Below, piece after piece: positions 5,086 through 62,076 of a stretch of DNA of 64,000 nt. Position 1 is the stretch's first letter; every line of letters begins with the position of its first letter. The stretch comes from Rhodosorus marinus CCMP1338 (lineage: Eukaryota > Plantae > Rhodophyta): contig JAMWBK010000008.1 of assembly GCA_029953675.1 (NCBI GenBank), positions 1-64,000 on the forward strand, in the 5' to 3' direction. Both the position numbers and the translations under genes were made by a program. The notes beneath the pieces were generated by a model, which was not told where the DNA came from, made no database searches, and worked only from the letters and a program-made list of their open reading frames with translations.

Positions 5086-5183
5086 ATCACTCGATAAGCG
5101 TTCGTAGAAAGAATGAAAGTGTAACTTTATCACCACGATAAACTCCAAAGTCCAACCCCAAATCCCAGACTTTTTACGCCAGA

Positions 5184-5945
5184 CTAACCCCAGACTCCCA
5201 CTGTGGCGTGTAACTGCTTCAGGGCGGCATGTTGCGTCTGCGGCCCAGGCCTTCGCATGGTGCGGATGGGTGTCTCTACACCGTTCTCTGGTACTTCTAC
5301 TGCCGAAACCGCCGCGTAGGTGGGTCTGGGGGTGTCATTCCCAAGGGCCGGGAAAGCCGTCTCAAACCGGACACCCGCAGGGACACCTGTCCCGACCGGA
5401 ACTTGATTGAAGCCCGTTCCGGCCGCAAGTTGATTGACCACCGCCGTCGGCCGGTGATGCGCCGAAGCTCCCGAGGGATTCGAAGTCTGTGCAGAAGCTT
5501 GCCACATGTGGGGCTTCTGTGCAAGTTCCGTGAGGCGGCTGGTGACATTATGTATCTCTGTGGTACTGTTAATTCGCGAGTAGAGATTGAAGACTGCTTT
5601 GTAGAAGTTCGCGATGTCCTGCTCCCCAATTCCGAGGGCGTGATAGCACTGATCGTAGCTTCGAAGTTGGTGGAGGAACGTGTTAGCGGGAGAGGATGAC
5701 GTAGAAGACTCTGTCCGACTCCCCTCCTGGCACGGTTCTTCTGGGCGTAAAGTAGTCGCTTGTAGTCCATCATGTGGCCCATGCCCGTCCTCTCGTTCAG
5801 CAATTGGAGAGGCAGGCAGCATTCCGCTCATTGCACCGGTATTCTTCGAATTCCCCTCCCCAAACGAAGGGGAAGTGCCAGTGTTTGGCATATTGTACCC
5901 CAGGCGAACCAAACCTACAAACTTAATTGCGAACCTTATCCAATA
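5184..5945 (-). mobile_element. 5' end and ORF1 N-terminus (ATG 5891) of a second T family, 3'-truncated
   Basis: The translation (FLHQLRSYDQCYHALGIG...ALKQLHATVG) matches ORF1 pieces at 17741 and 33216. Both ends are bounded by telomere-like units. Confidence 0.8.
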
Positions 5946-5972
5946 ACCCCAGATAACCCCAGACTAACGTAA

Positions 5973-6779
5973 CCGTGAGCTTTATTGGGCACCCCAGACT
6001 AACGTAACCGTGAGCTTTATTGGGCAGTCGCCTAATGCGACGTAACACTAAGCCGATTGCTATCTAGGGAATCACTCACAACAACCCCGCTACCGGGGTC
6101 TCATGCTACGTTCAAAAGAAAAAACAGGAACCAGTGGGTTCTCCAACTGGTCCGCACGTAGAGCGCCTAACCCCAGACTAACGTAACCGTGAGCTTTATT
6201 GGGCAGTCGCCTAATGCGACGTAACACTAAGCCGATTGCTATCTAGGGAATCACTCACAACAACCCCGCTACCGGGGTCTCATGCTACGTTCAAAAGAAA
6301 AAACAGGAACCAGTGGGTTCTCCAACTGGTCCGCACGTAGAGCGCCAAGCGCAATCTCCGCGTTGCCCTGCCATAGGATCCTGTTTAACTGGGATCGTGC
6401 ATCCCTCAGCTCCTCATCTCGATGCAACAAGTGTTTACAACTGTCCCGCAAAAAGTCTTGCGTCAACCTCCCGCTCCGCCCAAAGGTCTCTATCGCGATC
6501 GGGATGAACTTCTCCTCGGGCTTTTCCACACTCATCGCCTCTTTATAGTGCGCGAGCTTGTAGTTCTCCGCCAGTTTCGCTGCATACCCGTTTTTACGGG
6601 TATTAACCCCAGACTAACGTAACCGTGAGCTTTATTGGGCAGTCGCCTAATGCGACGTAACACTAAGCCGATTGCTATCTAGGGAATCACTCACAACAAC
6701 CCCGCTACCGGGGTCTCATGCTACGTTCAAAAGAAAAAACAGGAACCAGTGGGTTCTCCAACTGGTCCGCACGTAGAGC
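5973..6779 (-). mobile_element. Tandem array of four 5'-truncated 3' ends of family T-D (about 18, 158, 415 and 157 bp), separated by single telomere units
   Basis: An identical 3'-UTR sequence restarts after each CCCCAGACTAACGTAACC. The longest copy encodes the endonuclease C-terminus (KFIPIAIETFGR...). Confidence 0.88.
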
Positions 6780-7310
6780 CCAGATTCTCAGGTGCATGAT
6801 GTTTTTCATGTATCACTATTACGAAAGTTCAATGGACCTGAACCTGAAGGCTCGCGCGTAGTTCCTGTACTACAACCAGTAGTACCAAACCGGGAAGTGA
6901 AGTCTGTATTGGGACATCGTCTAGGTGAAAAGGGCCTGAATAAATACTTCGTTTACTTTGAAGGCGAAACAACGGACGATTTGAGATGGTTACCCTACCA
7001 TCAACTACCGCAGAACCAGAATACCAAGAAACGAATTCGGTATTATACAAACCTCCACAAGGCAGCTTCTTCTTCCACCGGATAGTTCTTTCTTGCAGTG
7101 GGGAGGAGTTGTGACGTGCTGACATGACATCTGGCTAAACATATTGGTGAGCTAAAAAAATAACCACCATGCGTACAAAATATAGTGTACGTCTATGATG
7201 CGCCCAGTGGACAAGATATTGTACGAGTACGGACGGGGCTAATAATAGTAGTCTAAAAGGGAAGTTGAACTATTTTGGATCACCAACACGCGTTAATACA
7301 GAACGTGTCA
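6780..7310 (+). mobile_element. Ty3/gypsy chromovirus 3' remnant: integrase tail and chromodomain (6792-7085), polypurine tract (about 7097-7109), putative LTR (7110-7310)
   Basis: HDVFHVSLLRK is followed by a chromodomain-like EVKSVLGHR..YFVYFEG..W segment. GGGGAGGAG precedes a TG...CA-bounded 201-bp segment. Confidence 0.7.
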
Positions 7311-7679
7311 CCTTCTTCCTGCTAGCTCTACAAACCCAAAATCAAAGCTCTTTTCCTTTAGACTCCAATTAAATCTTTCAAATCAAAGTTCCCCGCTGTG
7401 CCGGATTCTGTTTGAAAACTAACAACCCCGAGTGGGCGCCCTGGCAGAGGGAAAGGAGAGCCACAACCATGCAACTGCTAGCTACTCACCCCCGACTGTG
7501 CTGGATGAACGAAGCGAATGGTTTAATCGGAGGCTGGATGAACGCCAACGCCGCGTTGAAATTGGATCCACAATGTTCACCAATCATAGCTTTTTTCCCT
7601 TTCCGGTTTTTTCTTCGAGTCTCGAATTGAAAACAATTGTTCAGGCATTCACTCAGCGCTTTGCTCAATTCGTCTTAAA

Positions 7680-7709
7680 CCATTCATTCATTCATTCATT
7701 CATTCGTTC
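7680..7709. repeat. (CATT)n microsatellite, same unit as the family X 3' tail
   Basis: Direct reading: cattcattcattcattcattcattcgttc. Confidence 0.8.
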
Positions 7710-7930
7710 AATATAGAATTGATATTTAAATATGCAATATGAACGCATGAGTCCATTCGCAGAGCGATGCAGAGTGACCCAATAGACACTCGACTTCGGG
7801 AACGAACTGAGAAATAATTGGTCAATTTTCTTGACCAATTATTTCTATATTGGGATGGTTTTTGTTTTTAATGAATTCAGTTACATATGAACGGAATCGC
7901 TTTGGGGGTGCAGGTTGGACTGACTCTACG

Positions 7931-7973
7931 AACGAATGGTTTAATCGGAGGCTGAAAAAAAAAAAAAAAAAAA
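7931..7973 (-). mobile_element. 43-bp 3'-terminal insertion of family X with TSD ACTCTACG
   Basis: The X 3' end (cagcctccgattaaaccattcgtt) is flanked by ACTCTACG at 7923-7930 and 7974-7981. Confidence 0.75.
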
Positions 7974-8100
7974 ACTCTACGGGGTTCCCGATGGCATAAA
8001 TTAGCGGCGCTGACGTCTTGGCTATACCCGATTCAATATTCTGTTGCGATTCTTTATGTCCCGCTTGAAGGTGAGGATTCCGGATGGAACATCATTCTGT

Positions 8101-8820
8101 TGAATGAATGATTTATTCGGAGGCTAAAGGAAAAACTCCGTAGGGAAAAAGACTAAGCACCTCGAAGGTCGCGGGCCTCCAACAACAATGCAGCGTTCAC
8201 ACGCCACAGCAAGAAACTCAAGCGAGAAAACAAATATTGTAGACGGTCCGGGCGCTCGCGCATATATCTCCCAAAGCCAACGAGATCCAGTGTGGTCGAC
8301 AAACCCAAAGGATTCAATGATGAGAGGCACGAGGCGGTGTGCAAGAGCCAACGCTCGGACCTCGGGGGTAGACGGTGCCCTCGTTTACGTCACCTCCATT
8401 TGTTGACACACACTGGCAGCGCCAAAACCACGGCGCTCTCCTGCTGTCGGCAGATAACGACCAAGCTGGGGATTCGGGACAGCCGGGTCAACGCAGGTGG
8501 CGCGGCGGCTATCGTCCCAGCTGACCACTAGGTCAGCCACTCGTCGCTCACCATTGTGGCAGGCTGGGACCGTCAGGGGCCTCTCACGTTCAGTTTCGAG
8601 ACCTGCTTGTCGGACAACAGGCCGAATTTCGCGGTGTAATAGGGTTAAAAGGCGCATACGGCGGCCGGTGCGAGCACCTTGCACCGCTGGGCAACTGATG
8701 AGAAGGTGAACGCCATAATCCGCGGTATCTTCCATTTGTGAACATAGCGGACACGGCAAACCCGTCTCGTAGGGCCAGGGGGGTTGACGTAGCCCGAGGT
8801 ATAAGCGAAGAGAGGTAAGT
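8101..8820 (-). mobile_element. Diverged X-subfamily 3' fragment (zinc knuckle and endonuclease)
   Basis: CPLCSQMEDTADYGVHLLISC...RRVADLVVS is homologous to the X ORF2 C-terminus. A CATT tail is at 8101-8112. Confidence 0.8.
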
Positions 8821-9239
8821 ACTTTGAAATCAGTAGGCGTTAGGGGGGGAAAATCATTCTGTTTACGCGATTGAGTTTGTTGCCGTGCCGTATGAACGCT
8901 GCAGCGTTACTGGAGGCCCGCGACCTACATATACGGTGCTTCGTCTTTTTTCCGCTCACGATGTTTTTATTTTGGCCCGCTGAGTAGAAAATTTGTTCGA
9001 CGTCTAGATATTCACGATTCAATCTTTTGTTGAATTCAATATGTCCCGTTTCAAGGTGAGCGTTCAGTATGGAACATCATTCTGCTTACTCGATTGAGTT
9101 TGTTGCTGAGGCTTATGAATGCTGCGGTGTTATTGAAGGCCCACGACGTTGACGGTCCTTAGTCTCTTTTCCCTTGGGCTTTTTGTGTTTTAGCCTCCAA
9201 TTAGATCATTCGCTCGACGTCTAGCTGTTCGCGGTTTCA

Positions 9240-9735
9240 ATACTCTGCACTGACCCGTTGCTTCCCAGAGCTCTTCGTCTCAGACGCTGCCGCCAGATAC
9301 TCAGCATTTGTGGACCTCGCCAATACCTGCCCTGTGGCCACCGCCCACCTCACCACTGCTGCTGCCCGAGGGGAAGCGGCTTCTGCCCTTCGATGAGTTA
9401 AGGAACGAAGATATGCCGAGAGCATGGCCGGCCTGCTTGTGCTGAAGGTCGCTCTCACCAGTTCCAGCCTTTCATTGTGGAAAGCTTTGATCATGTGGAC
9501 AAGACGGGTTTGGAGAGGCTTCGGAAATGTTTTGCTGAGCATCGTACTGAATGCTTGGCGCCCTTGCGGGCGTTTGAGTGTCGCCATGTTGCAAAACCCA
9601 ACCCACATGCTTGCCGAGGCCATCGGCGCCTGGGGTTGCGTACTTTAACTAGTTCTTAGTTCCTCTTCAAACCTTGCGTAGCGCTTCGGGCTATGCCAGT
9701 AAAGTCCGGTCTAGTAAAGTCCAGTAAAGTCCGGT
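9240..9735 (+). mobile_element. Diverged Y-family 3' fragment with (AGTAAAGTCC)n tail
   Basis: Homologous to 22900-23357. Tail repeats lie at about 9697-9733. Confidence 0.75.
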
Positions 9736-9798
9736 TGAACGAAGCAGCCTCGCGTGGCATTGCACGCAGGAAGATCTCCTGTAAAAATAATTTTTTAC

Positions 9799-10497
9799 GG
9801 TGTCAGGAAATTTCCTATGGAATTTTCCAACAAATGCGATTTGCTAGTTTTGCCAGAGAAGCTCCATAGCTTCTCTTCCTGGCAGGAGACATGAGCGCAA
9901 GTTTTCCAGGCAACCGCGTTCTATTCATTCATAATGCCGGAACAAAATATTTCCTAGTTCCCGGCTGCGCGGGAGAGCCGTGGATCTGCCGCCGCCAGCA
10001 TGAGACGCCGCAAAGAGATCAAATACGCGGGGGCTTTGTCTTCCCCTGGTGTTCGTGCTTCGGCACTAGCACATCGCTTGGTACCCCTGATCATTGAGTG
10101 CTTTGGGTTCATGGACTCTGTTGGTTCTCGCTGGCTTCGGGAGTTGTTCCGCGAACGCCCTGACCGTCTTCAATCGTTGTTTACCCTTTTAAGTTTCCTG
10201 CTGTGGCGCATGAATGCCGCTTTGATGTTGGAGGCGCGAGTTCTTCGCCGCATTTAGTCTTTTTTTCCCCTCGGGGTTTTTTTTCAGCCTCCGATTAAAC
10301 CATTCGTTCATTCGTTGTAATATGGGCGTTCTGTCTGGTGTCAGGAAATTTCGTATAGAATTTTCCAACAAATGCGATTTACTAGTTTTGCCAGAGAAGC
10401 TATGGAGCTTCTCTTTCTGAGAGGAGACATGAGCGCAAGTTTTCCAGGCAACCGCGTTCTATTCATTCATAATGCCGGAACAAAATATTTCCTAGTT
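9799..10497. repeat. Two about 161-bp direct repeats (9799-9959 and 10337-10497) rich in short palindromes
   Basis: Direct alignment with few mismatches. The copies flank an X fragment. Confidence 0.8.
9960..10318 (+). mobile_element. 5'-truncated family X 3' end
   Basis: Encodes MRRRKEIKYAG...LMLEARVLRR, followed by the X 3' UTR and a cattcgttcattcgtt tail. Confidence 0.88.
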
Positions 10498-11095
10498 TGA
10501 TTGCGCCTGACTGTCGCGGCGCTTAATCGTTTTTCCAAACAGGGTTTATTTAATTTTTCTGAAAGAAATTATTCATTTCTATCACAACTATCTGGGGAAG
10601 GCTTCTGGGTGGTGCGCACTACGTATCGCAGAATCTTAGTTGAGAATTTGAGAGTATGTTCCGCCCTTCACATCATCATGGCACTCAGCCTGCGTTGCTC
10701 ATTTCTCGCGATAAGCGGTGTTTTGGAATCAGAAAGGTTCCAAATGATGTGGTGGTCGACTCCTTGGATGGTCTTTAGTCCTTGGATAGCTGGGCTTTAC
10801 TGGACTTTACTGGACTTTACTGGGCTTTACTAGCATAGCTAGCACAACCACCACCAAAACACCTCGGTTAGCTCAACGAGGTAGTTGAAGACCTATATAG
10901 GTCAAGCAAAAAGTAGCTGGAGGTTTGAAGGGAACAAATCAGAGCGAGCAATGAAAAGGTTACTTGTTGCGATTTGCAAGCGTCCGTCTACGATAATTCG
11001 CTGATAATTGAGTGCTTCGGACTACTGGAATCTGTGGGTTCTGGTTCGCTTTTGGATCTGGGAACGCCCTGGCCGTCTTTCCTCGTTCAACCAAG

Positions 11096-14000
11096 ATGAA
11101 TCGAACTTTTACGGTGATTGGGTGTATAACCCTAGCAATATTTCTCTGCGTCGGAGGAGTGAGAGCTGATGCTGAGAGCGTGTGTGATGGATGGGGATTC
11201 TCTAATACGACTTGTTTGATGGTTCAGGATGTGAGTTCTGGTTACGTGGATGGTGTTGAGAACGGAACGTTTGCAATCTATGCACCGTTCTTCTACGTGA
11301 TGGACTTCACCGCGGATACGACGGACACGACAGAATTGTTTGGAACTGAGCAGGATATCCTATTACACGCGTACTACGTTCTAATCAAGGGCGCGGCTGG
11401 GGCAGCTGCTGCAATGCGGGGTACGAACGTGACGATTGTGGCGAATATCATTGAGATCCAGAGCGATGGAGATTTTGAGATCAACCTGAAGGCAACGGAG
11501 GTCACGATCCCTCCTCCAAGCGCACCAGCCACACCCGAGACCCTCGATCCGATGCAGAGGACGAAAGACCCCAATACGTTTCGGGGTGGTGACATGGGTA
11601 CCATGGGAAGTTGGGGAGCCACCGGCAGCCAGGGCAACCAGGGGGGAAGCTTTACCATGGTCGCAAAGTACGTGAACATCGAGAGCCTAGTCGAGGGAGG
11701 ATATACCATGACCATAAGAACTGATGGAAGCGACGGTGGTACCGGTGGATATGGTGGAGACGGAGGTAACGCGCAGATGCCTATCGATGGAATGGCGTGT
11801 GGCAAGAAGAACAGCTGGGTGGGTGGGAAGTGCAAGGATTCTTGGTGTAACGAGTGTCCAACGGGTACCATGAACGGCGATAAGAAGCCATGTCTGTACT
11901 ATCAGCCGGGTTACCCGCAGCCGGGCGGCCAGGCGGGACATGGAGGAACTGGAGGAGCTGGTGGGCTGGCAGGCACCGTACATATCTACTCGAGCGTTGT
12001 TATCGGAGGCGAGGAAGAGAACGGGCTTAGCAATGAGGCGGCGGCTGCATACTTCAATGGGGAATCCAATTCCGGGGGAGGGGGACCAGGCGGGGAGCCA
12101 GGAAATCCCGGATTAGGGGGTCAGCTCACGGTGAATTGCTACACGAGAACATGGCAGAAGAACTATATTCTGAACACGAACTACTACGAAACAGTTTCGT
12201 CAGGATATCCGCTTGTCGGCGATGTTGGACTGACCAACCACGCCGGAAAAAGTGGAGAGGAGTCTCACGACCCGCTACCGATGTCATTCCGAGCGACAAT
12301 CGGCGCTGAAGTCGAGGAGTGGGACACCAATGAGTACGACGATCCGCGATCCTTTGCGTTCGAAAACTTTCCGCAGCCGTTGGCGTACATCGACTACGGT
12401 CTCAGCCTCTCGAAGAGGATGCTGGATATTATGTTCTTTAACGATGATGCTGAAGAAAACCAAAACGCGTACACCGTAATTCTCTTGTCGGTTTCCGATA
12501 TGCTCTACAATGCTCAGCTAGTTGCCAATCGGACTTCAGACGAGACGGAGAAAGCCAAGTACACCTCGCTAGCTGGAAAGGCGATTTCTATTATCAAGGC
12601 GGCGAATCCGTTGACCACCTCCTCGGGTACGAATGCCAACCAGGTCAGCGTCATGAGCTTTGAGTACCTGCTCGACTACCTTGAAACACAGCGCCAGCTC
12701 GGAGAATCCTTGGAGTACTACTACGACGCCTACCGAAGCAGCGTCGAGGATTCGGAAGCTTCCATGGAGCTCCTCTCCAATGCGACGAGCAACGCGCAGA
12801 CGGGTATCGCCACGCAGTTGGCCAAGCAGCAGGCTCTGATGGAGGAGATCATGGAGGTGAACCGGTCGATGTCGGTAGCTGATCAGAATATTTGGAAGTA
12901 CCAGAGCACCATGGAGTTGCAGCAGGGTGAGATGGATGAGTGCTGGCGTAAGGTCGAAAAGCGTGCCAAGTTCGAAAAGGTGATGCAGTTTGTGAGCTTC
13001 TTTGTTAGCGTCTTTGACGCGGCATTCGCAGTGACCAAGGTGTTGTCCAAGGCCGGCAGTTGGACCAAGAGTGCTTCGCTCTCAGATACAACGAAGTCGG
13101 TGTTCTCCGGCATTGAGGGCTGGAGCGGTGCCAAGTTTTCTATGATACCTTCGCTGACGAATGAGATGGTGGACTTCTTCCCTTCGCCTGGAGAAAGCGC
13201 CGACTGGTCAGGGTACGAAGTGAGCTACGACGCGATCATGGCCGACATTGGCCTTCTTACGGAGGGAACGGAGACCCTCGCGGATCCGCTGGAGAGCGTC
13301 TACAGTGCAGACGACTACGACGAGGCCGTGGCGCTAGCTGCTCAAATTAGCGATGTTCAGACCTCTGCCAGTAGTGCGATGGTGGCACTTGACCGACAAG
13401 AGCTTCAAGACTACGTGGGGTACATGAAAACAGAGTGCTACACCTCGGCGACTGCATTCCTTCGGGCATTCGATGGGCTGGAGATGTGGGTCAACCAAAA
13501 GAACGACCTCATCGCGCTTTACTCCTCCTACATGAGCTACCTCAAGCAGGTCACGGCAACAAAGCTCTACCTCCAGAACGTCGTGGCTGCACTGGCGGTC
13601 GAGATGAAGAACAACATGATAAATCCCGCCGCACCCGCTGTTAAGGTCGCTCACCAGACCAACTACAACCTTCTGATAGCCGATTTTCACCGAGATCTTG
13701 AGGCCGTCTTCACCGCGAGGAACTATCTCATGATGGGCTCGATGTCGTCAGTAGATACCATCAGCCTCGCAGACTGCGAGTGGGAAACTTCCCTTCTGGA
13801 CACATCAGGGAGCCTATACTTCAGCTGTGCATCAGACGCGATCATTCAACTGCGTAAGTCACTCAAGAGTTGGTACGAGACCTCCTATACGAAAAACCAA
13901 CTGATGGAGTATGGCACCTTCTGGGGCCCTTACAATATCAAGGCGGAGACAGTAGGAGAGGATAACTGGGCGGAGTTTCTGGAGACGGGGTCCATCAATT

Positions 14001-16979: not shown

Positions 16980-17499
16980 TAGTTTTACCAAATTATTGCT
17001 TTCGACCACAGCGCTCTTTTGCTACACACATTGAGAAGTTAGGTTTTCTCCGGCTCACGTTCTCGTATGTCCGATTCATTTGTGCTTTAGACCTACCAGC
17101 TTGTGTCAGGATCCGACCAATTCTGCGAGTGCGTTGCATCGCGCTAGTATCCGGAAGACCGACCGCGAGGATGACGGCGGACGATGGTGCAAGAGTCCAG
17201 CACCTCAGAAGGTACAGAGGTAACGATAACCATAAATGTGGCCCCTGTGTTCTACGAAGAAACTGGACTAGTTGTTTAGCAATGCGCCGACCGATGCGAT
17301 TGAACACATTGCGAGGTCGACTCAATAAGCATTGTCGATTATGGTTCGTCACAGCAAAGATGAACCGCGCTGGCGCGCTAGCTCTGGGGAAACATCGTTA
17401 GCTGTCCACTTTGACTCCGTCTGGAATGCTCTAGAAGCCCACGGGGCATATTAGGTAGCCGCCGAATAAAGGTTACTTTAGTCGGGGGTTAGTCTGGGG

Positions 17500-19903: not shown

Positions 19904-19925
19904 AACCCCAGACTAACGTAACCCC
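19904..19925. repeat. Interstitial telomere unit joining two non-telomeric sequences
   Basis: aaccccagactaacgtaacccc. Confidence 0.9.
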
Positions 19926-20330
19926 GGTTTACTTTTGTCAACCTGTTCCTTGCGCCCAACAGCTTCTTCTCTAGGTGCTCACCTTCAATCTCAATCATGA
20001 GCGGGGATCATAGTCATACAAATGATCACGTTCTGAAAGTATTCTACGTCAGCGTTGACGCCGCGGTTGATTCCCCATTAAGGCGGTAGAACGGAAGCTC
20101 TTCGGAAAATGCGGAGTCGAGAAATATAGTGCTCACAGGGCCGCCGAGTTGGAACCAAGGAAGGAATCGTCTTTTTAAGCGTTTTCATCCACTTGCAAAC
20201 TAGCTGATCGATATATTATCTAACTTTTGACAGGTGAACCTATATAAAAACAAGCTTTCAGTACACTCAGTGATACTGAGCCTTTACGGCATAAGTTATA
20301 CAGTAAAGGCTTGCTACTTACACCTTTACC

Positions 20331-21846: not shown

Positions 21847-21859
21847 GGTAAGCGAGTTA

Positions 21860-23357: not shown

Positions 23358-23380
23358 TTTACAGTTACGTTAGTCTGGGG

Positions 23381-25400: not shown

Positions 25401-25417
25401 GTTACGTTAGTCTGGGG

Positions 25418-51852: not shown

Positions 51853-52017
51853 TAGCAGTTCTTTCTCCCTCTCCATCTCGCGGGTACCCGAGGTGTGTGG
51901 GCCCGCGATCACAAGCGGCTCGGGGTACGGCCCGCGAACCTCCTTCACAATCATACTTGTAACTGTTAATCAGCTTTTACCGTCGTTTACCACAAACAAA
52001 GCCGTCCAAAAACCAAA
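51677..52017 (-). mobile_element. T-G 5' end and ORF1 N-terminus (ATG 51954) with (CAG)n
   Basis: Matches 17500-17840. Preceded on the minus strand by telomere units at 52018-52043 and 52066-52083. Confidence 0.85.
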
Positions 52018-54149
52018 ACCCCAGACCCCAGACTAACGTAACCGTAAGCTTACCCCTGTCCAGGGAGACTAACGTAACCCCAGTAGTACTGCTACGGTCC
52101 AAACGGTCCATACGAGACTAAACCACCGAGGTGTGTCGTCAAGGGACTTTCTAAGGAGCCATGTCGCATTATTGCCCTTTAGGGGATCGATTGGTAGAAT
52201 CTATACCCGACCCAAGCTTGCTCGCAAACCGTAAGAATCGATGCCAATGAATCCTGCCATAGAGTCCAAAAAACCCGAACCGCGGAAAACCTACACGTGA
52301 GTAACCAGCCGCAGGGCTTCAGACGATATTAGTAGAAACCATTCACAGGTCATCATCACATACCTTGTCATCTACCCGTCAGAATCGAACGAATGGTTTA
52401 ATCAGAATCCGCGGAATGATGGAATTTCCCGAACGCTGGTTGCGTTCAGAAATGGTAGTTCTCCGTGATGTGGATTGTACTACTTGTGGTATCAGCTTTG
52501 CAGACTGAGAAACTCCTGATCGGAGATGCCATGGACAGAGGTTTTAGAGTACTGGCTTGGTCTGCGAAAGGCCCTTGACAAAAGCTTCCCAAACCGACTC
52601 CGCTGAAACCTCATGATCGTTCATAAACAGCTCCGAAAGCAGAATAATCCAGTTTGCACTTTCGCTAAACTGTGCACTCATTATTTGCAACTCTTTCGTC
52701 CCCCGGCAGCTAGGGGGCACAGTGGGCACTGTCAATAAGAGCTAAGTACCGAATGAAAACGGACAACGTAGAATCGGATCGACTTTCAGGTCACCTGCTA
52801 CCATTCGAAATATATGGTTTATTCGACCGTGTGCTGTACTGCAAGAGATATCGGAGCATGAAACGTTTCGTTCAGCTTTGCCTTTGGCTCCTTCAATTAG
52901 ACCGCACTCGCATAGAAACAAGTGAAGAGCGGAAGTGTGTCCGCGGAGATGCTGGCACTGAGTTCGGAGGTACAGATCAGATTAGTATGCCCAGATAGTT
53001 TCGCTCAAACAAAATCCGCGCGGGAAAACCAGCTTTCGGCGCTCGCGGATCAGCGCATACTCTGCGTCTAGATCCACTTCTTATGATGCTATGGAGGAGT
53101 TGCATGCACACCAAAAAAGAAAAGCAGTTGTCATGAGTAGAATTCCCTCGTCCTAAACGTCATCGCAAAACGTACCGTAGTCAATCCTGCAAAAGCGTGA
53201 TGGGATCTGTATTTGGAGCCGCGCGGACTTGCAACCAAAAGGACTCGAGGCTCTCGTTAGCTTCCAAGCGCTTCTGAATCCAAACTTAAAGGCGACGATG
53301 CAAGGTGTCTATGTATCTGTCGTTCGTTGCCTCTCATCCACTCATGTGCGAGTTCACTACTCGTGGGATAGAGCTCTCCAGGATGCTTCCACTTTCCAAT
53401 ATGTTCCCATCAAAGTTCACCTCCATGAATCTAGCATCCAGATCACCCTCTCGAGTAGCCCTAGAGCTTAGCAACCACACCCTAGCGCTACTTGAGAGGG
53501 GAATGCAACTCTGACTGATCATCATTATCCCTCCTTCCCAAGAGTCCTATGCCCAAACAAAATTCAGAGAAATTCAACCCCTCCAAAAATCATCTAATTC
53601 AAAAAAAACTTACTGGCAATATTTTATAACGAAATAAACTTATGGAAGTCCATCTTTTTATTATAAACAAATATGAAAAAGGAGAAACCCAAAATTCAAA
53701 ATATTTCCTTGACCTGAATATTATCTTACTATTTTTAGATAAATATATCAATAATAAATATTCTATGAAATTCAATATATATATTTCATCCAAGCCATAA
53801 AATATACAATAATCGAATCATTGATTTCTTAGGTTGAAGGGGAAATATTACTGAAATGGTTGCTGTAAACGAGAAAGTCTCCCAAATTAGAGATTTGTTC
53901 GCGCGGTCTGTTTTCGTGGTAGACGACAAGCTTTGGCTGGCTTTCGTGTTTTGGAAGGGGCTTGGGAATCCGCTCGCGTGAGTTGGGGTGAGAACTACGG
54001 ATTTCGATGAATCCAGATGTGAGACTGCTACTTGGGAAAGACGCCCGTGGCCTCTTTTCTCGAGCCTATATAATGAGAGGCTTGGGCACAGTCGCGAGAG
54101 TTGTATGGATGTACGGGTATTGTGGCTTAGGAGCTAGAGGAAGTTGAAG

Positions 54150-55649
54150 ATGATAGCTGTGGACCTTGGCGTTGATGGCCATGGCGGCAGGTCGAGTTTG
54201 GACGGATTGCGGATCGCTGTACTCGGCACGGGACAGTATGGATCTGCCTTTGCAGAGCGGCTTGGACGGAACAACGCTGGAATAAGTGTCGTTTTGGGAT
54301 CGAGGAGAGAGCTTATAGACCCAAACGGATTTCCACTTCCGTGCTCGGTTCTTTCTTATGAGCAGGCTGCGGAAGAATCAGATGTTATTGTTTTTGCATT
54401 CAAAGTCGACGACCATGCGGACGTCGTGGCAAGCTTGGGAAACCGGCTGGAAGGTAAAGTGATTGTCGATGTCTCGAATTCGGCACATAGAAGCTACCTA
54501 CAGAGAATCAGGGAGAGACTATCCAGAACCCAAAACATCGACCAAAGCGCTGGTGGGTCAAATACAATACGTCTCCACCGCCTTCTAGAAAAAGAGCTGG
54601 TACACGCTGACGTTGTTAAGGCATTCAACAACATCTCGGCCTACTCGCTCTCCCTTCCCAGTAGAAGCCCAGGCGCCAGCAGGAACGCCTGTATGATATC
54701 TGGCGACAGTGACGATGCTAAACAGCTCGTCGCAAGAATTGCCCGGACCATGGGATTCGAAGTCGTTCACATGGGAGGTCTGGACGCATCGGCCGGACAG
54801 GAGGGAGCAGTCCATAGTTTCTTTGAGGGGTGGAAGATTGCTTGTGGCATTGGTTTTGCGCTTACCGTCGCCTTCCTGCTGTATGTAACGATAGCCTACT
54901 GGGCAATAAGCTCGTTGGAATGGATTACCTACCCAACCAGGTCGTTTCTAATCGTAACTGGAGACGTATCGGCTGGACTGTTGGCCATGACCTTTCTGCC
55001 CGGACCGATTGCCGCGTTCTGGCAGCTGTTTCGAGGTACGGCGACGCGTCCATTCCCGGCGTGGTTTGGGACTTGGCTGACGATTCGGAAACAGCTTGGA
55101 CTGCTCTCATTCGCAATCTCAATCCCTCACGTGATCATGGCATGCAAGGGAGACGAACCGACGGAGTTGAGAATCTCAAGTCAGCTTGCACCAGTATTCG
55201 GGACAGTGGCGTTTCTTCTGTTCTTCGTCATGTCCTCCTGCTCGAGGGGCACGGCATCCGCGCACTTCACGTGGTCTGAGTTCCGATTCATTTTTGTCCA
55301 CATCGGATACGGCGTTGTAGGCTTCACCCTAGCCCACGTGGTGTGTATTGGAGTGGGGCATGTTGAGGACTTTCACAGCTCGGCAGACAGCACTTCACCG
55401 TTCTCGGGTGAAACCGCGCTGAGCGCAATGTTCCTAGTAGGTGTGCTCGGACTTTCGATTCTACTCAAGCTCATCGTATCAGTACCACCGATGCGCACCT
55501 GGGTAGGGAGGATCAGATCTCACCAGAAGCTTGACTTATTTCCAGTTTGGCTGCGACTCAGCACCTCACCGAGCGACGCGGATGTTAACGCCAGTTTGGA
55601 TCCCGATCGGACTGTTCCAGTTTCTCAAGATTCCGTTCCCGAAGATTAG
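54150..55649 (+). CDS. STEAP-like metalloreductase (F420:NADP oxidoreductase-like N-domain plus ferric-reductase-like transmembrane domain)
   Basis: Motifs IAVLGTGQYG, GSR, GKVIVDVSN, VVKAFN, WLTIRKQLGL..H and WSEFRF..H, with multiple hydrophobic helices. Intronless. Confidence 0.85.
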   Translation: MIAVDLGVDGHGGRSSLDGLRIAVLGTGQYGSAFAERLGRNNAGISVVLGSRRELIDPNGFPLPCSVLSYEQAAEESDVIVFAFKVDDHADVVASLGNRLEGKVIVDVSNSAHRSYLQRIRERLSRTQNIDQSAGGSNTIRLHRLLEKELVHADVVKAFNNISAYSLSLPSRSPGASRNACMISGDSDDAKQLVARIARTMGFEVVHMGGLDASAGQEGAVHSFFEGWKIACGIGFALTVAFLLYVTIAYWAISSLEWITYPTRSFLIVTGDVSAGLLAMTFLPGPIAAFWQLFRGTATRPFPAWFGTWLTIRKQLGLLSFAISIPHVIMACKGDEPTELRISSQLAPVFGTVAFLLFFVMSSCSRGTASAHFTWSEFRFIFVHIGYGVVGFTLAHVVCIGVGHVEDFHSSADSTSPFSGETALSAMFLVGVLGLSILLKLIVSVPPMRTWVGRIRSHQKLDLFPVWLRLSTSPSDADVNASLDPDRTVPVSQDSVPED

Positions 55650-55789
55650 CTGTATATTCCCAAAACCAAACTAAAAAGCAAATACATACAACGCACGTTC
55701 GTGCATCACCTCCGTCCCCTTGCGCCCACTGTCTCTCAGTTCCTGGGGGGAAGACCGCTTTATGTCTTCTCCAACGGACACTTTCAACT

Positions 55790-55875
55790 GGCATCTACTC
55801 GAGTAGCCTGAAGCGCTGCGCAGGGTGTGAAGGGGAACTCAGAAGGTCTAGGCGGCGATGGGGCGGCTTGGCAAG
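55790..55875 (-). mobile_element. 86-bp diverged Y 3'-end insertion with 11-bp TSD
   Basis: CACTTTCAACT at 55779-55789 and 55876-55886, with a gcgcttcaggcta 3'-UTR motif. Confidence 0.75.
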
Positions 55876-55979
55876 CACTTTCAACTAAACGTTGCCTATT
55901 CCAGGGTGGGCTCACCGAGACGGGAGGGGCGCTTGGCAGCCATGCCCGTCAGTCTTCAGAGTCTAAGTAGCTCAAATGC

Positions 55980-58046
55980 TTACTCCACCGTAGCTTTGTA
56001 CGTTGGAATTTGTCTGAATTTGCCGCTCATTTCAAAAGCGTGTGCAAACCGGAGGAGTTGTCCCTCCGAGAACGCAGAAGCGTACATCGATATACCCCGA
56101 ACGAATGGTTTAATCGGAGGCTGAAAAAAAAAATCCCGAGGGGAAAAAAAGACTAAGCGCGGCGAAGTACTCGCGCCTCCAACATCAAAGCGGCATTCAT
56201 GCGCCACAGCAGGAAACTTAAACGGGTAAACAACGATTGAAGACGGTCAGGGCGTTCGCGGAACAACTCCCGAAGCCAGCGAGAACCAACAGAGTCCATG
56301 AACCCAAAGCACTCAATGATCAGGGGTACCAAGCGATGTGCTAGTGCCGAAGCACGAACACCAGGGGAAGACAAAGCCCCCGCGTATTTGATCTCTTTGC
56401 GGCGTCTCATGCTGGCGGCGGCAGATCCACGGCGCTCCCCCGCAGCCGGGAGATAACGACTAGCTTGAGGGTTAGGAACAGCAAGATCAACGTATGTGGT
56501 ACGGCGGCTGTCGTCACAGGTGATCACCAGGTCGGCTACACGGCGTTCATCATGGGATATACCCCAAGGCAGGCCTTTGTGCAACGGTCCAGGGAAGCTA
56601 CGGTGCGAGATCGGCGGGCGAAAATGTTCAGATAATCAAACTGGACTCAACTTCAGTTTTTCGGGGCTCTTCTTCACCAACCTTATATGGGGGTAGCCAG
56701 CCATTGCCGGTGTCGTAGAACAACCTCCAACATTCGAGAGATTGTCCCCAACCAAAGGATCGATAACATAGGGCGCACAAGAATTCGTCAGGGCGACAAT
56801 AGGGTCCAGATTGTGAGTCTCAAGAAGATTGTCAATCTTAGCCTGAGCTCCCTCCACGTTTGCTTTCCTGGCCGCCAAGTACGACTCATCTCCCCTCCCA
56901 GGAAAGCCTGCGGTCTTCTCCAAAACGTCTTGCCCAAAGAATGGCATCACTCTGTCCGCGTGTTTTCGATTGTATTCGATCAGATCAAGGATACCATCTA
57001 GTCTGCCAGTCTTCGGCAGACTGGTGTCCAAGGAATCCTTGAGTTCAGTCAACAAAACCTTCTCTTCATTCTCGTTGAACAGGTCATACCCGTCCGCGTG
57101 AATTTCAACTATTTCGGCGCCAAGGCTTTCTAAATTGGTGATCGCCGCGATCATAGCAGCGTCAGAACCTTGATGCGTGGACACTGTATCAACATCACAA
57201 ATCCAAGGCGGATATCCTTCAGCATACTGTCGGTGGTGCCCGCCTCGTCAACAAGAAACTTTGTGTAATCGGCACCGACGTAGTCTTTGCTCCATTCCGT
57301 AACAGGATCGTCTGCATCCACACCGGTCAGCACAGTTAGCAGCATAGCAACGTCATGAACACACCGCCCCATCGGCCCGAGCGTGTCCTGAGTGGGGCTG
57401 AACGGCATGACCCCAGTTCGACTCAAAAGTCCAACAGTAGGTTTCAAACCGACGATACCGGTCATAGCAGCGGGTCTAGTGATGCTTCCGTCTGTTTCCG
57501 CGCCAATTGCCACGGTGCATAAGCTTGCGGAGACAGCGGTCCCACTCCCAGAGCTGGATCCAAAAGGAGTTCGGTCAAGAACGTATGGGCTCCTCGTCTG
57601 CCCTCCCAGAGTGCTCCATCCTGAACATCCGTTCTCTGAGCGAAGGAACCCCATTCACTCATATTCGTTTTACCGAGGATCACCGCACCCGCCTCGCGCA
57701 ATTTTTGGACGATAAACGCATCTTTGGGAGCCACATATCCTTCCAACGCAAGGCAACCACAGTTTGTGGACATTTTGTCGGCAGTTCCAATACATTGCTT
57801 CAAGAGAACTGGAATCCCATGCAGCGGCCCACGGGGACCATTCTCAGCACGCTCCTCATCTAGCTTACGGGCAATTTCCACCGCATCCGGATTTACCTCG
57901 ATCACGCTTCGCAAAGTTGGACCGGATTGATCCAAGTCCTCGATTCTCTTCACGTAGCCCTCAACTGCTTCTACTGAAGTCAAAACACGGGTTTCAAACC
58001 TCTCCTGCAGATCCGTAACGCTGGCTTCTACCAGTTCCCCATGACC
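55980..58046 (-). pseudogene. Amidase-signature family gene with two apparent frameshifts (about 57650 and 57195), an 84-nt intron (56598-56681) and an X insertion in the last exon
   Basis: Motifs GPLHGIPVLLK, GKTNMSEW, GSSSGS, GAETDGSI, VGLKPT, AGYPHI and GLPWGIS|MYASAFSEGQLLRFAHAFE. The 5' exon was not located. Confidence 0.82.
56099..56555 (-). mobile_element. 457-bp family X insertion with 10-bp TSD GATATACCCC
   Basis: TSD at 56089-56098 and 56556-56565. Confidence 0.92.
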
Positions 58047-58477
58047 TGTTTTGTCTTTGACGAACATGATAGGAAGCAACGACTGAACTCAGCAAAGTAC
58101 CAAAGAAGTCTGGAGACGAAAACAAATACCACCGGAACCTTCGGCTCCCCCTCCCTCCCCCCTTTGGCGACGATGAGCCAAGTCCGAACCTCGAAATTCC
58201 TGGAGACGAAAACAAACACCACCGGAACCTTCTGCTCCTCCTCCCTCCCCCCCCTTCTTTACCTTGACCCGCGATCGACCAACACGAACAGATTTTATTA
58301 TCTCCCACGGCTTTAACGGATTTTTTCTCCCCAACGGCTTTTTTCTCCCCGACGGCTTTTTTCTTCCCAACGCCTTTTTTTCAGGCCAACGTACTGTATG
58401 TTTTTTTCCCTTTTTTTGGAGAACGATAGTGCTGTGCTTCCCATCGTACGCCGGCAATCTGGTCTTGAAATTGGATT

Positions 58478-58735
58478 GGATTTATTGGATGGATTTATTA
58501 GCACTACGCAAGGCGTGAAAAGGGACTAAGAACTAGGTAGGGAAGCGTGCAAACCCAGGCACCTATGGCGCGCCTGAGCCAGCATGCTGCTCGAGTAGCG
58601 CCACAGAGACGCTTAAACGCCGCAAAAGTTCCAAGTATTCAATAGGATGCTCAGCGAAACATTTCCGCGACCACTCCAAACCCGACTTCTCCACGTGGCC
58701 AAAGCTTTCCACAATGAAAGGCTGGAACCGGTGTG
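58478..58735 (-). mobile_element. Y-related 3' end with variant (AATAAATCC)n tail
   Basis: Homologous to the Y 3' region. The tail reads gctaataaatccatccaataaatccaatcc on the minus strand. Confidence 0.75.
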
Positions 58736-59079
58736 AGCGACCCTCTAGACGACGTTACGGAAGGGGGTATACAGTGGACACGCCTTACACACTGCCCGGT
58801 TCCCACACGGCGCTTTGTGCCCCGCGTACACGTCCATACCTGGAGCCGCCTCCTCCGTGCTGCACTTGAACTTTCCATGGACAGAACCGCACCAACAAAC
58901 GCCAGTCTGCTGCTTGGGGTTACGTTAGTCTGGGGTTTCTTAACGCATAGATAGATTGCTTCTTCCTTCCTTACGGGCTCCACTAGGGAGTCCTCTAGTA
59001 AAGCGTTCACGGTTACGTAGTCTGAGGTAACCCTTGTTGGAGCGGTTCTGTCCATGGAAAGTTCAAGTTAGTCTGGGGT
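58736..59079. mobile_element. Patchwork of short T fragments and telomere units in both orientations
   Basis: An ORF2 N-terminal piece (58736-58915), a telomere unit, a T-I 3' UTR (58938-59005), a variant unit, an inverted 37-bp recopy of 58864-58895, and another telomere unit. Confidence 0.75.
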
Positions 59080-59950
59080 AACCGTAAACTTTACTGGGCA
59101 GCTGCCTACTGCAGCGTATCACTATTTCTACTGCTATCTAGGGAAGTGTTTACTCTAACCATGCTACCGGGGTCTCATGCTACGTTCTGAAGAAAAAAAA
59201 GGAACCAGTGGATTCTCGAACTGGTCCACTCGCAGAGCGCCTACCGCTATCTCTGCGTTACCTTGCCAAAGTTTCCGGTTCATCTGAGCCCTGACATCGC
59301 TCAGCTCCGCAGTCCGGTGCAATAGGTATTTGCAGCTATCTCGTAGAAATTCCTGTGCTATGGGGCCTGTCCGCGCAAAGCTTTCGATCGCGATTGGAAT
59401 GAACTTGTCGTCTGGCCTCTCAACCGACGTCGCCTCTTTGTAATGTGCTATTTTCCACCTCTCCGCTCGCTTCGCTGCGTACCAATTCTCTGAGCTACTA
59501 CCCTTCACGTATTTCTCCTGCAGTGGCGAGGTAACCGTCACATCCAGCGCATACCGTTGGAAAGTCCTCGGGTGAGTGGCGATGATATCTGGTCTTAGCC
59601 CGTAATTCTCAAAGTATTTCTCAGGTTCTTGCTGTATGCCCAGGAAATTCCATCTATTCAGCCAGAGCACGAGCTCCGTGCAGATTTCGTCATGCCTCCG
59701 CTGCCAGAGTCCCGTCGAGGTTGGGCAGTGGTGAAATCTTTGTACACCTGTAGTACTATGTGTACTATTGCAACTAGTACACTTCTCCGTCGTCCTCAGT
59801 CCCGGGATCGGCAGGCCCAACAGTTGTCTAACGCTCACCTGCAGTTCCGTCGAGTCCAGTTTTTTTTAGCGCCAAAGTCGGCATTTCTCGCAGCCACACT
59901 CCCGATCCCGAACCGGCCGCAGACCGGATTCGAGCACGGTTTTCGCGGGA
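59080..59950 (-). mobile_element. 5'-truncated family T-J with intact 3' UTR
   Basis: Endonuclease ORF at 59164-59838. 59560-59950 is the inverted match of 61625-62050. Confidence 0.88.
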
Positions 59951-60059
59951 ACCCCAGACTAACGTAACCGTGAACGCTTTACTAGAGGACTCCCTAGTGG
60001 AGCCCGTAAGGAAGGAAGAAGCAATCTATCTATGCGTTAAGAAACCCCTAGTGGGTAAC

Positions 60060-62053
60060 CCCATACTGCGACAACTCGCGACTGCTCCAGAGAATTTTTC
60101 ATCTCCTCTGACCCGTGCCCTGCGCAGCAGCAGACTCTTGCCGTTCGTGAAGCCTACCAAGGACGCAGCTCCCCAGGAACGCCCAGGAGTTCGACTCATC
60201 GGAGTACCAGAAGTTCTGCGTAAGGTGGCAACCCAGTGGATCCTCCGACAGGTTACAGACCGAATCCGCGAACTGCTCGTCCCCTTACAACTAGGCATTG
60301 GAGTAAGCGGAGGATGCGAACGCTCACTCCATGCGATTCAGGCCCATCTCGCCTGCGAACCTGAAGCAGTGGTCCTTCGACTCGACCTTGAGAACGCCTT
60401 CAACCGCATAGACCGCCGGATTGCTAAGCAACTGCTGGACCACCATTTTCCCGAGCTGAAAGCGATATACCGGCTTGGCTACGGCACTGACAGCTCGGAC
60501 TCCCCTAAGCTCTTCGGCTGGCGCGCTACTCACGGACCAGACCAGGTCAATACGAGTCGACTGACGCTGCAGGCCACAACCGGTGTACAACAAGGCGATG
60601 CCCTCGGACCGGTCCTACATGCGCTATCCTTGGCCCCCTTCTTGGAAGCACTGCACCGAAAAGCGCCTGATCTAACGACCGTAGCCATCCACGACGACAT
60701 CACCATCGTGGGACCCCTGCAGCCGCTGAAGGATATACTCCACTGGGGGCAGACTATGCTCCCTGCCCTCGGTGCCAGACCGCAGCTAAGCAAGTGGACT
60801 CTCTACGGACGCACCCTGACGACAAGTAGACTAATTAATCGGGACATCCCTGGCGTACATGTCAACAGAGACGGCGTGACGATACACTCGATCCCGCTAG
60901 GCAACCGGGAATACCTTCAGGAAGAGTGCCGTGCAATGCAAAACAACCACAACAAACTTTTTAAGGAAATAGCACGACTTCCTGACAACGAACTTACGAC
61001 ACAGCTCGCCCTCTTCAGGTACTGCACTGAAACCAGGCTCGACTACATTCTACGCTGCCTAGCGTACCCGTTTGGCAGAACTTTGGCACGCGAGGCGGAT
61101 GCCATGACCAGATATCACCTGGACATCCTATTCGGAGGCCTCGCTCCCGCAGCAATCGAGGACGAGGAGTACCTACAACCGGTTTCGGATCAGATCGCGC
61201 TCCCTTGCCGCTGGGGCTGGGGGGGACTGGGGTTCGCTACTCGCACCCGTATACAGCCAATCGCCTTCTACTCGGCGTGGACAAACACTTTCAGAAGCAA
61301 TCAAGGGGACTGGCCGTACGTCACTGCACTACAGAGGGAGGTTGCTACAGGCGGAACTCCAGACGAGCACACACCCACGGGACTACAATGGTCAACCGCA
61401 CAACTAGCGGATCAGATCCGTGCATCTACCCGAGCAATTCTACGGCGATTCCGCCCAGAAACCCCGCCCCGGATCAGGAGACTAGTCACCCTGCAGCAAA
61501 CGAGGGAACCCCCCCAAGGAGGCGCACCAGAAGACCCAGCAGCTTGGAATATTGGTTCAATACAACAGACCCTCTCTCGAGAGGCACACCATACGGCATT
61601 CCAAGAGCTGGTCACGAATTCACGAATTTCCCGCGAAAACCGTGCTCGAATCCGGTCTGCGGCCGGTTCGGGATCGGGAGTGTGGCTGCGAAAAATGCCG
61701 ACTTTGGCGCTAAAAAAAACTGGACTCGACGGAACTGCAGGTGAGCGTTAGACAACTGTTGGGCCTGCCGATCCCGGGACTGAGGACGACGGAGAAGTGT
61801 ACTAGTTGCAATAGTACACATAGTACTACAGGTGTACAAAGATTTCACCACTGCCCAACCTCGACGGGACTCTGGCAGCGGAGGCATGACGAAATCTGCA
61901 CGGAGCTCGCGCGCTGGCTGAATAGATGGAATTTCCTGGGCATACAGCAAGAACCTGAGAAATACTTTGAGAGTTACGGGCTAAGACCAGATATCATCGC
62001 CACTCACCCGAGGACTTTCCAACGGTATGCGCTGGATGTGACGGTTACCTCGC
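60060..62053 (+). mobile_element. Family T-J ORF2 (RT through the endonuclease start), truncated at both ends
   Basis: LRLDLENAFN, GVQQGDALGP, AIHDD and LPCRW. There is an A8-run frameshift at 61712-61719. Ends in a telomere unit at 62054-62076. 59970-60060 is a minus-strand T-I 3' UTR. Confidence 0.9.
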
Positions 62054-62076
62054 CTGGGGTTACGTTAGTCTGGGGG

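Follow-up and report, generated by a model that had tools for sequence, protein, structure and literature searches.

How does telomere sequence come to lie inside a chromosome end, away from the terminal array? The left end of contig JAMWBK010000008.1 of the red alga Rhodosorus marinus (assembly GCA_029953675.1, bases 1–64000; this whole 64,000-nt stretch is called the window hereafter) raises the question, as exact and approximate scans outside its terminal array find about 28 interstitial telomere tracts of 7–40 nt, in both orientations, in a mosaic of retrotransposons and host DNA. A first-pass annotation had listed eight sites in this region as scars of chromosome breaks healed by telomere addition. 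We show below that most of the interstitial tracts are integration junctions of a family of telomere-targeted long interspersed nuclear elements (LINEs), here called A-type, with subfamilies A1 to A5. For the eight listed sites, on the other hand, the best explanation, to which we attach a probability of about 0.65, is that a chromosome end broke, gained a new telomere de novo, was then re-colonised by A-type elements or joined to other DNA, and so became internal.

Results

The chromosome end and its 16-nt telomere unit

The terminal telomere array (1–338, − strand) consists of 21.1 perfect 16-nt units. On the + strand it reads (CCCCAGACTAACGTAA)n, the C strand; the − strand carries the G strand, TTACGTTAGTCTGGGG, heading toward base 1. 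Such a perfect 21-unit array is consistent with a fixed telomerase template, short of proof. The 8-mer CCCCAGAC occurs 53 times in the window, against 2.76 occurrences expected. A second chromosome end (L001, on contig 7) carries a 16-nt unit and element families matching those of the window; the two ends make up a sample of 86 kb with 11 junctions of the kind in which telomere repeats do not follow an element 3′ untranslated region (UTR).

The R. marinus genome paper reports telomeres on contigs, and its main text is silent on the repeat unit and on subtelomeric elements (PMC10250338). An earlier survey found rhodophyte telomeres, those of mesophilic red algae included, recalcitrant to standard analysis (PMC3622300). 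A 16-nt unit that is regular over 21 copies (window 1–338; L001 20869–20934) is unusual within Archaeplastida, and it may account for the failure of telomere probes and telomeric repeat amplification protocol (TRAP) assays in mesophilic red algae. Ten matches to GTTACGTTAGTCTGGGG in a metagenome scan were all unrelated and at chance level.

Eight junctions between non-telomeric DNA and G-strand repeats

All eight listed junctions are present within a few bases of where the first-pass annotation placed them, and all read 5′ to 3′ on the G strand from other DNA into telomere repeats. The annotation had raised the case in which an element 3′ UTR remnant precedes every such unit; this remnant is absent from the preceding (proximal) side in 8/8, and at none of the sites does the conserved A-type 3′ UTR end precede the tract.

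Junction 1 (5179–5195, boundary 5195/5196, − strand) reads ..cacagtggga and then GTCTGGGGTTAGTCTGG, between a 3′-truncated A4 element and the 5′ end of an A1 element. The A4 piece (5196–5943, − strand) is a 748-bp 5′ part whose first open reading frame (ORF1) is open through the break and whose 3′ side is truncated at 5196; a second copy of the A4-family 5′ end is present in L001. At junction 2 (19904–19925, boundary 19925/19926, − strand), ..aaagtaaacc is followed by GGGGTTACGTTAGTCTGGGGTT, 22 nt lying between two single-copy segments, a proximal one of 398 bp (19926–20323) and a distal one of 599 bp (19305–19903). The latter is joined directly, at 19304, to an inverted A2-like piece (17471–19304, + strand) made of a degenerate tract (17471–17499) and an element 5′ part that is 3′ truncated at 19304. 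A direct fusion of junction 2 to this inverted element is ruled out by the 599 bp of single-copy DNA in between.

Junction 3 (29634–29673, boundary 29673/29674, − strand) reads ..aacagtgat and then GTCTGGGGTTACG.., 40 nt or 2.5 units. Its proximal side is an A5 element (29674–31334, − strand) with a 5′ UTR and a complete ORF1 (31303–29675, 62% identical to A1 ORF1), 3′ truncated at the ATG of ORF2, and its distal side is the broken end of an inverted second copy of A1 (A1 copy 2, 27831–29633; 99% identical to the terminal A1 and broken in ORF2). This copy belongs to an inverted head-to-tail block (22644–29633, + strand) comprising a C-family LINE 3′ end, four 5′-truncated A-type copies, an A1 microcopy and A1 copy 2, with tracts at 23364, 25401, 26926, 27680 and 27794–27830. 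A breakage-fusion-bridge palindrome around junction 3 was considered and rejected: the mirrored matches either belong to different subfamilies (73%) or are insertions that arose independently, each 5′ truncated at a different point. The ATGTCT microhomology proposed for this site is not verifiable, no read-through copy of the A5 subfamily being available and the other subfamilies beginning ORF2 with ATGAGC or ATGCC.

Junction 4 (31335–31366, boundary 31366/31367, − strand) passes from ..attcagta into GGGGTTACG.., a tract of 32 nt made of GGGGTTACGTTAGTCTGGGG and an 11-nt variant unit, and its proximal flank is a C-family LINE broken in antisense (31367–31561). The 35 nt beside it are not a B-family microcopy, as the C-family copy at 23180 shows the same stretch to be C-family sequence with a small indel. 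Junction 5 (40842–40865, boundary 40865/40866, − strand) reads ..gaagctcca and then GGGGTTACG.., about 23 nt with GGGGTTACGTTAGTCTGGGGTTA as the added tract. It abuts a 294-bp duplicate (40866–41159) of the 3′ end of a host short-chain dehydrogenase gene (original at 44239–44532), a duplicate that includes 18 bp of the adjoining element. Junction 6 (52066–52083, boundary 52083/52084, − strand), ..gcagtacta and then CTGGGGTTACGTTAGTCT, starts on single-copy DNA continuous with host genes; distal to it lie a 22-nt 3′-UTR-like piece, a second tract with a 7-nt variant unit (52017–52043) and an A2 5′ end. Junction 7 (58915–58937, boundary 58914/58915, + strand) leads from ..tctgctgct at the end of a sense A-type ORF2 fragment (58751–58914) into TGGGGTTACG.., 23 nt with TGGGGTTACGTTAGTCTGGGGTT as the added tract, and then into a 72-nt 3′ UTR microcopy. 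The host segment between junctions 6 and 7 (52084–58750), which carries a STEAP-like reductase gene (54150–55649) and an amidase gene over two frames (58079–57151), thus has outward-pointing healed tracts on both sides of the interval 52084–58914. Junction 8 (62054–62075, boundary 62053/62054, + strand), finally, reads ..ttacctcgc and then CTGGGGTTACG.., 22 nt with CTGGGGTTACGTTAGTCTGGGG as the added tract. Its proximal flank is an A3 element (60064–62053, + strand) that holds the reverse transcriptase (RT) and part of the endonuclease region and is 3′ truncated at 62053; a 99%-identical A3 copy (59951–59525) crosses this break point and reaches its own 3′ end at 59085. Distally follows a 5′-truncated A-type copy (62076–62689) with its own tract (62690–62713).

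Five of the eight sites therefore adjoin elements that comparison with other copies shows to be truncated at the break, four of them 3′ truncated in sense and one broken in antisense. Since target-primed reverse transcription truncates 5′ ends, 3′-truncated sense copies need a break or a deletion. The annotation had also stated that a new element 5′ end or a fusion follows each tract. This is true in part: a full-length 5′ end follows at junctions 1 and 4, 5′-truncated copies or microcopies at junctions 6 to 8, a 10-nt snap-back palindrome and then a 5′-truncated copy at junction 5, and an inverted broken element at junction 3, while single-copy DNA with no fused element lies distal to junction 2.

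The tracts start in one register, from short seeds

The start phases of the eight tracts are, in order, G9, G13, G9, G13, G13, C11, T12 and C11, all within (GTCT)GGGG. They fall in an arc of five phases (G9–G13 of the 16-nt unit), with P = 0.0012 under random phases, and the consistent register that had been claimed is thus borne out for these sites. Two additional junctions conform to it: L001 20869 (CTGGGG) and window 60063, where an antisense A3 end runs into TGGGGTTAC (60054–60063, − strand) and then into an 84-nt 3′ UTR microcopy. The register holds without junction 1 (P = 0.0036), and still holds when junction 1 is left out and the two conforming junctions are added (nine junctions, P = 0.0004). 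In the larger set of the two ends, one junction, L001 21412, is an exception.

At six junctions (4, 5, 7 and 8, L001 20869 and L001 21412), intact copies run on past the position at which non-telomeric DNA meets G-strand repeats, and the seed shared by both sequences can be read off. Read-through copies give GG at junction 4, G at junction 5, C at junction 8, CTGG at L001 20869 and TT at L001 21412, the latter fitting the other (second) TTA of the unit; at junction 7 the seed is TG, judged from an 81% homolog. A seed of at least 1 nt is present at 6/6 junctions with a read-through copy (chance (1/4)^6, about 2e-4), and the short microhomology that had been proposed is indeed found, at 1–4 nt, at all testable junctions. 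Furthermore, the G and C seeds used phases G13 and C11 and not the equally matching G5, G9 or C4, a choice that points to the ...GTCTGGGG part of a template as the preferred site of alignment.

At the inner edge of the contig-7 array (L001 8600–8632), the first tract, GGGGTTACGT, follows ...ggttttacgtcc, and the flank resembles a degenerate unit. This tract starts at GGGG and was left out of the junction counts as ambiguous.

Most interstitial tracts are integration junctions of A-type elements

About 20 of the 28 interstitial tracts (about two thirds) have the conserved A-type 3′ UTR end on their proximal side. These tracts are integration junctions and not scars: they are the 3′ junctions of a telomere-repeat-specific LINE with a restriction-like endonuclease (RLE). 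The alternative offered by the first-pass annotation, namely that the element RT copies repeats from an RNA tail, applies to these ~20 junctions and not to the eight sites above.

In the window and in L001, every one of the ~20 A-type 3′ UTR ends runs into G(G)(GG)TTACG / TTACGTTAGTCTGGGG on the sense strand in one register, including at the terminal array. As each 3′ UTR is followed by a G-strand unit, the A-type elements have their sense strand on the G strand, with their 3′ ends toward the chromosome tip. The distal ends of the tracts lie at GGGG, GGGGT, GGGGTT or GGGGTTA in 22 of 30 cases (four phases, P<1e-5), and tract lengths are 7–66 nt versus 338 nt for the terminal array. By analogy with R2, the A-type endonuclease would nick the C strand inside CCCC; the read-through telomeric tail of the RNA would pair with the nicked strand and prime reverse transcription; and the G strand would be cut after GGGGTT(A), so that about 5 bp would be duplicated and the typical 19–21 nt spacer would result. 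A transcript contig from a related strain or species (L002) crosses a 3′ UTR end into the next copy, which fits RNAs carrying downstream sequence.

A series of head-to-tail 5′-truncated A-type copies (5944–6779, − strand; 16, 158, 415 and at least 155 bp) is 100% identical, with tracts of 19–31 nt between the copies (5944–5974, 5991–6009, 6168–6188 and 6604–6624). Serial template jumping during one integration event could have produced this array. Variant units of 7, 10 and 11 nt (TCTGGGG, TCTGGGGTTA and TTAGTCTGGGG) stand before full-length 5′ ends in 7/7 cases versus 0/17 for the other tracts (Fisher 3e-6), at 5179–5195, 5944–5974, 17471–17499, 27794–27830, 31335–31366 and 52017–52043 and at L001 20910–20934. 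They are best read, by comparison with MoTeR1, as part of the A-type 5′ terminus.

Another 5′-truncated A-type copy (39152–40832, − strand), with a normal 3′ UTR and a tract at 39128–39151, bears an inverted 10-nt telomere piece at its 5′ junction, creating the palindrome TAGTCTGGGGT-A-ACCCCAGACTA (40833–40855). A perfect palindrome of the form (T)AGTCTGGGGT-A-ACCCCAGACT(A) is found at the 5′ junctions of two 5′-truncated A-type copies, this one and L001 21428–21450. It looks as if the G-strand 3′ end had snapped back and been extended by 10–11 nt before second-strand synthesis switched to the cDNA.

Architecture and relatives of the A-type elements

The full-length element A1 (339–5178, − strand; 4.8 kb) abuts the terminal array by its 3′ end. 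It comprises ORF1 (5148–3565), the RT part of ORF2 (3568–1775; Pfam RVT_1, 2.4e-13), a part with a CCHC motif and a PD-(D/E)XK endonuclease (1637–417; assigned by motif columns and a profile match to the R2 RLE domain) and the 3′ UTR (416–339), all on the − strand. The reading frame shifts by 1 nt between RT and endonuclease near an A-run (gaacatgaaaactc, ~1865; window 1850–1870), which may be a real frameshift or a long-read homopolymer error. RVT_1 matches are also found in A3 and in the B-family, and the best solved relatives of the A-type RT are R2 and LINE-1 ORF2p. Aligned endonuclease sequences show the invariant columns C206, C224, R234-H235, D269, D284 and K314..Y318, and their profile matches residues 939–1035 of a solved R2 protein (1.2e-5), while a Pfam search gives no match to the apurinic/apyrimidinic endonuclease (APE) domain Exo_endo_phos in A-type proteins. 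Copies have a constant 3′ end, variable 5′ truncation and lengths from 16 bp to 4.8 kb, and no long terminal repeats (LTRs). Judged on these sequence features, A-type is a non-LTR retrotransposon with an RLE, of the R2/CRE/NeSL group. Subfamilies A2 to A5 and many truncated A-type copies fill the window.

Database homologs of the RT include a SLACS-type RT, the nearest being a marine-eukaryote transcript (77%) and an R. marinus protein (42%). Protein searches found one annotated R. marinus locus, which is subtelomeric, two chromosome ends being sampled here. Homolog searches returned two proteins for the endonuclease part and zero for ORF1, and no element ends are present on the contigs of P0114 and P0005.

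The A-type 3′ UTRs end in TGCC(C/G)A(A/G)TAAAGnTnAC after a shared terminal hairpin. This hairpin, GCnGC-ATTAG-GCnGC, lies just upstream of the AATAAA-like motif, with compensatory changes in 4/8 predicted pairs (26816–26925 and other 3′ UTRs), and since such changes occur in the predicted pairs, it suggests an RNA element that would be recognised by the RT. At the A1 5′ end no ribozyme, HDV-like or of another known kind, was detected with Rfam, either in the window at gathering thresholds or in 4700–5250 at E<=1.

Other elements and host sequence in the mosaic

A B-family LINE (45523–48118, − strand) carries an RT and an RLE and ends in a (RTTC)n tail; it is not telomere-specific. Further B copies or fragments end at 7934, 10305, 24680, 49497, 56103 and 62718. 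The B-family end, ...GATTAAACCATTC(RTTC)n, occurs at many unrelated insertion sites, often before GAT or GTA, and B-family sequence covers 7516–10314, 24390–24686, 45523–49503, 56098–56553 and 62714–64000, including an inverted pair (45522–46909 and 49503–48119) that is 98.4% identical. The C-family LINE likewise carries an RLE and has a 3′ tail (AGTAAAGTCC)n, with two inverted copies that are 99% identical; its regions are 20324–22070, 22644–23357, 31367–31561, 9242–9735 and L001 16906–16936.

A quasi-palindromic patch (58864–59085) contains a 34-nt A-type ORF2 piece (58864–58898) that is inverted at 59034–59068. Degenerate tracts border the patch, as does a head-to-head junction (GTTAGTCTGGGGT / AACC / antisense 3′ UTR). 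Single-copy DNA between element blocks holds an ORF of 1340 codons (11012–15034) with no Pfam match and with a GACACC-type repeat at 14517–14587. Host genes are also caught in the mosaic, namely the duplicated dehydrogenase 3′ end (40866–41159 and 44239–44532) and the amidase region (56636–58079), which spans two reading frames. A 27-bp tandem repeat is present in 9 copies (35017–35263), and a 387-bp repeat in 2 copies (35694–36480) contains B-family endonuclease-like sequence.

Discussion

Breakage and healing as the probable source of the scars

The cycles of breakage, healing, invasion and internalisation put forward for this region fit the eight sites better than the rival explanations, given the truncated flanks, the register and the seeds. 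In such cycles the chromosome end would be lost or broken repeatedly, inside the array or in unique DNA. A seed of 1–4 nt would then align with the ...GTCTGGGG part of the telomerase template and telomerase would extend the 3′ end from there, so that new synthesis would start in or just before the G run. A-type elements would re-colonise the new telomere (junctions 1, 4, 5, 6, 7 and 8), or the still-short tract would be joined to other broken DNA (junctions 2 and 3), leaving inverted blocks and a buried scar. Tracts of one or two units would persist either because long interstitial tracts re-break, as in MoTeR arrays, or because insertion prefers the telomere base.

Several points weigh against this explanation. 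The scars are short (17–40 nt, and 66 nt in L001) relative to the 338-nt terminal array, which is extremely unlikely under uniform insertion, and the answer just given, survivorship or a preference for the base, is one that we infer. Telomerase as the agent we likewise infer from the junctions, and end joining mediated by microhomology, onto a tract already present, would leave such seeds as well. The sample comprises two ends (86 kb) and 11 junctions, one of which, L001 21412 (TTAGTCTGGGG), departs from the register. At junction 1, the tract GTCTGGGGTTAGTCTGG holds an 11-nt variant unit and recurs before A1 copy 2 (27810–27827); because of this recurrence and because variant units are confined to full-length 5′ ends, the tract was probably carried by the element, though the break at junction 1 is still real. 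At junction 2, the weak point is that the unit may have been inserted during repair, between flanks that were once contiguous. Furthermore, the data come from one long-read assembly of a repeat mosaic, in which blocks alternate in orientation and misjoins are possible.

Could the element RT rather than telomerase have made the tracts? Target-primed reverse transcription from a nicked C strand, using 3′-truncated or foreign RNAs or jumping between RNA tails, would turn the register into a trace of the nick site. R2-type enzymes perform end-to-end template jumps and can use RNAs without a 3′ UTR; the 100%-identical tandem microcopies at 5944–6779 resemble serial jumps, and the L002 transcript continues past a 3′ UTR end into the copy that follows. 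The healing register (G9–G13) moreover adjoins that of the 3′ junctions (G13–G16), and sense-oriented A-type sequence is present at five junctions. We nevertheless regard this origin as unlikely: antisense RNAs would be required for junctions 4, 5 and 60063, the scheme fails for junction 2 and for junction 6, where the proximal single-copy DNA is continuous with 6.8 kb of host genes, and priming from a fixed nick does not predict 1–4 nt seeds at 6/6 junctions. It covers at most five of the 11 junctions, whereas breakage followed by telomere addition covers all. A related scheme for the antisense junctions, with end-primed cDNA synthesis before the action of telomerase, was set aside, as they are accounted for just as well if an antisense copy simply broke.

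New telomere synthesis would also be dispensable if broken ends had been joined by microhomology to tracts already lying beside elements, at this chromosome end or others, or copied onto them by break-induced replication or template switching. The microhomology of 1–4 nt at all testable junctions is what such joining would leave, the mosaic holds clear tract-free products of end joining (among them 19304/19305, 44513/44514 and the 294-bp templated duplicate at 40866–41159), and MoTeR arrays are known to undergo both end joining and break-induced replication. Entry into a tract would, however, be expected at any phase that microhomology allows, and the starts seen here fall within a single third of the unit (P ~0.001); equally matching G5, G9 and C4 were passed over in favour of G13 and C11, and the tracts are canonical from their first base. 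An origin by joining or copying therefore appears improbable to us. As for the assembly itself, near-identical repeats (98–100%) in both orientations could have produced artefactual or chimeric-read joins, above all at the inverted blocks and head-to-head tracts, in a single assembly whose genome paper does not describe subtelomeres. Artefactual joins would ignore telomere phase, and the junctions are base-precise, in register and provided with seeds; junction types recur at an independent chromosome end, and the palindrome GTCTGGGGT-A-ACCCCAGAC occurs at two loci with different flanks. We consider an artefact very improbable.

Breakage and healing by telomere addition could be taken one step further, with A-type elements as partners in end repair. 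Their preferred place of addition would be a nascent telomerase seed of ~20–23 nt from one round of synthesis (GGGGTTACGTTAGTCTGGGGTT), telomerase and retrotransposon would re-cap the broken end together, and the telomeric 3′ tail of the element would serve as substrate for regrowth of the terminal array. We doubt that this is the case; if true, it would be a hybrid telomerase/retrotransposon capping, of polarity opposite to that of Drosophila, in a red alga.

Comparison with known systems

The closest analogue is MoTeR. In MoTeR arrays of Magnaporthe, truncation and de novo telomere formation from 1–4 nt seeds have been observed directly, long interstitial tracts are fragile and single-unit junctions stable, and truncated elements are internalised as "relics" by end joining (PMC7367193). 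MoTeR1 and MoTeR2 of Magnaporthe oryzae and the FoTeRs of Fusarium oxysporum are CRE/SLACS-like and share an RT and an RLE with A-type. The likeness extends to insertion in telomere repeats, head-to-tail arrays, tracts down to one unit or less and variant repeats at the 5′ terminus, as well as to capping of truncated elements from 1–4 nt seeds, fragile interstitial tracts and end-joined internal relics. In MoTeRs, however, the 5′ end is distal and is lost by erosion, whereas in A-type the 3′ end is distal and erosion gives 3′-truncated copies. The hosts also differ, a fungus with TTAGGG repeats versus a red alga with a 16-nt repeat in which several diverged A-type subfamilies coexist, as does the evidence, an experimental time series there and a history read from one assembly here. 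A-type thus works like MoTeR and is not a member of the MoTeR family, given its opposite polarity and non-fungal host.

The sense strand of SART1 in Bombyx mori lies on the telomeric G strand, as in A-type, and both SART1 and TRAS1 insert sequence-specifically into telomere repeats in a fixed orientation. These elements differ from A-type by an APE-type endonuclease and poly(A) tails, in place of a C-terminal RLE and a 3′ UTR hairpin followed by telomere sequence. The head-to-tail LINE arrays at chromosome ends of Giardia (GilM and GilT, with an RLE) and Drosophila (HeT-A, TART and TAHRE) are also comparable; yet 5′ ends are distal there and Drosophila lacks telomerase repeats, whereas the R. 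marinus arrays are capped by the canonical repeat.

Healing by telomerase, as known from ciliate macronuclei and from yeast and human terminal deletions, uses 0–4 nt of complementarity and a preferred or default template start, giving a constant register (Melek and Shippen 1996, as cited in PMC7367193). The R. marinus junctions share G-strand repeats on non-telomeric 3′ ends, short complementarity and a constant register, and differ in that the healed ends are now internal, buried by retrotransposons or joined fragments, with 1–2 units left. Mammalian short interstitial telomeric repeats are inserted at sites of double-strand-break repair, and junction 2, with its 22 nt between single-copy segments, resembles them.

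The healing process is already known from fungi and ciliates, and what is new is the organism, the 16-nt unit and the polarity of the element. To our knowledge, telomere-targeted LINEs with an RLE had been described as fungal only, and a red-algal family of opposite polarity widens the picture of these elements. The scars also provide a prediction for the alignment region of the telomerase RNA: its template would span 1.25 units or more, complementary to ...GTCTGGGGTTACGTTAGTCTGGGG..., and the 3′ part of this template would pair with ...GTCTGGGG. The region as a whole is a natural record of chromosome-end breakage, healing, capture of foreign fragments and burial of host genes in subtelomeres.

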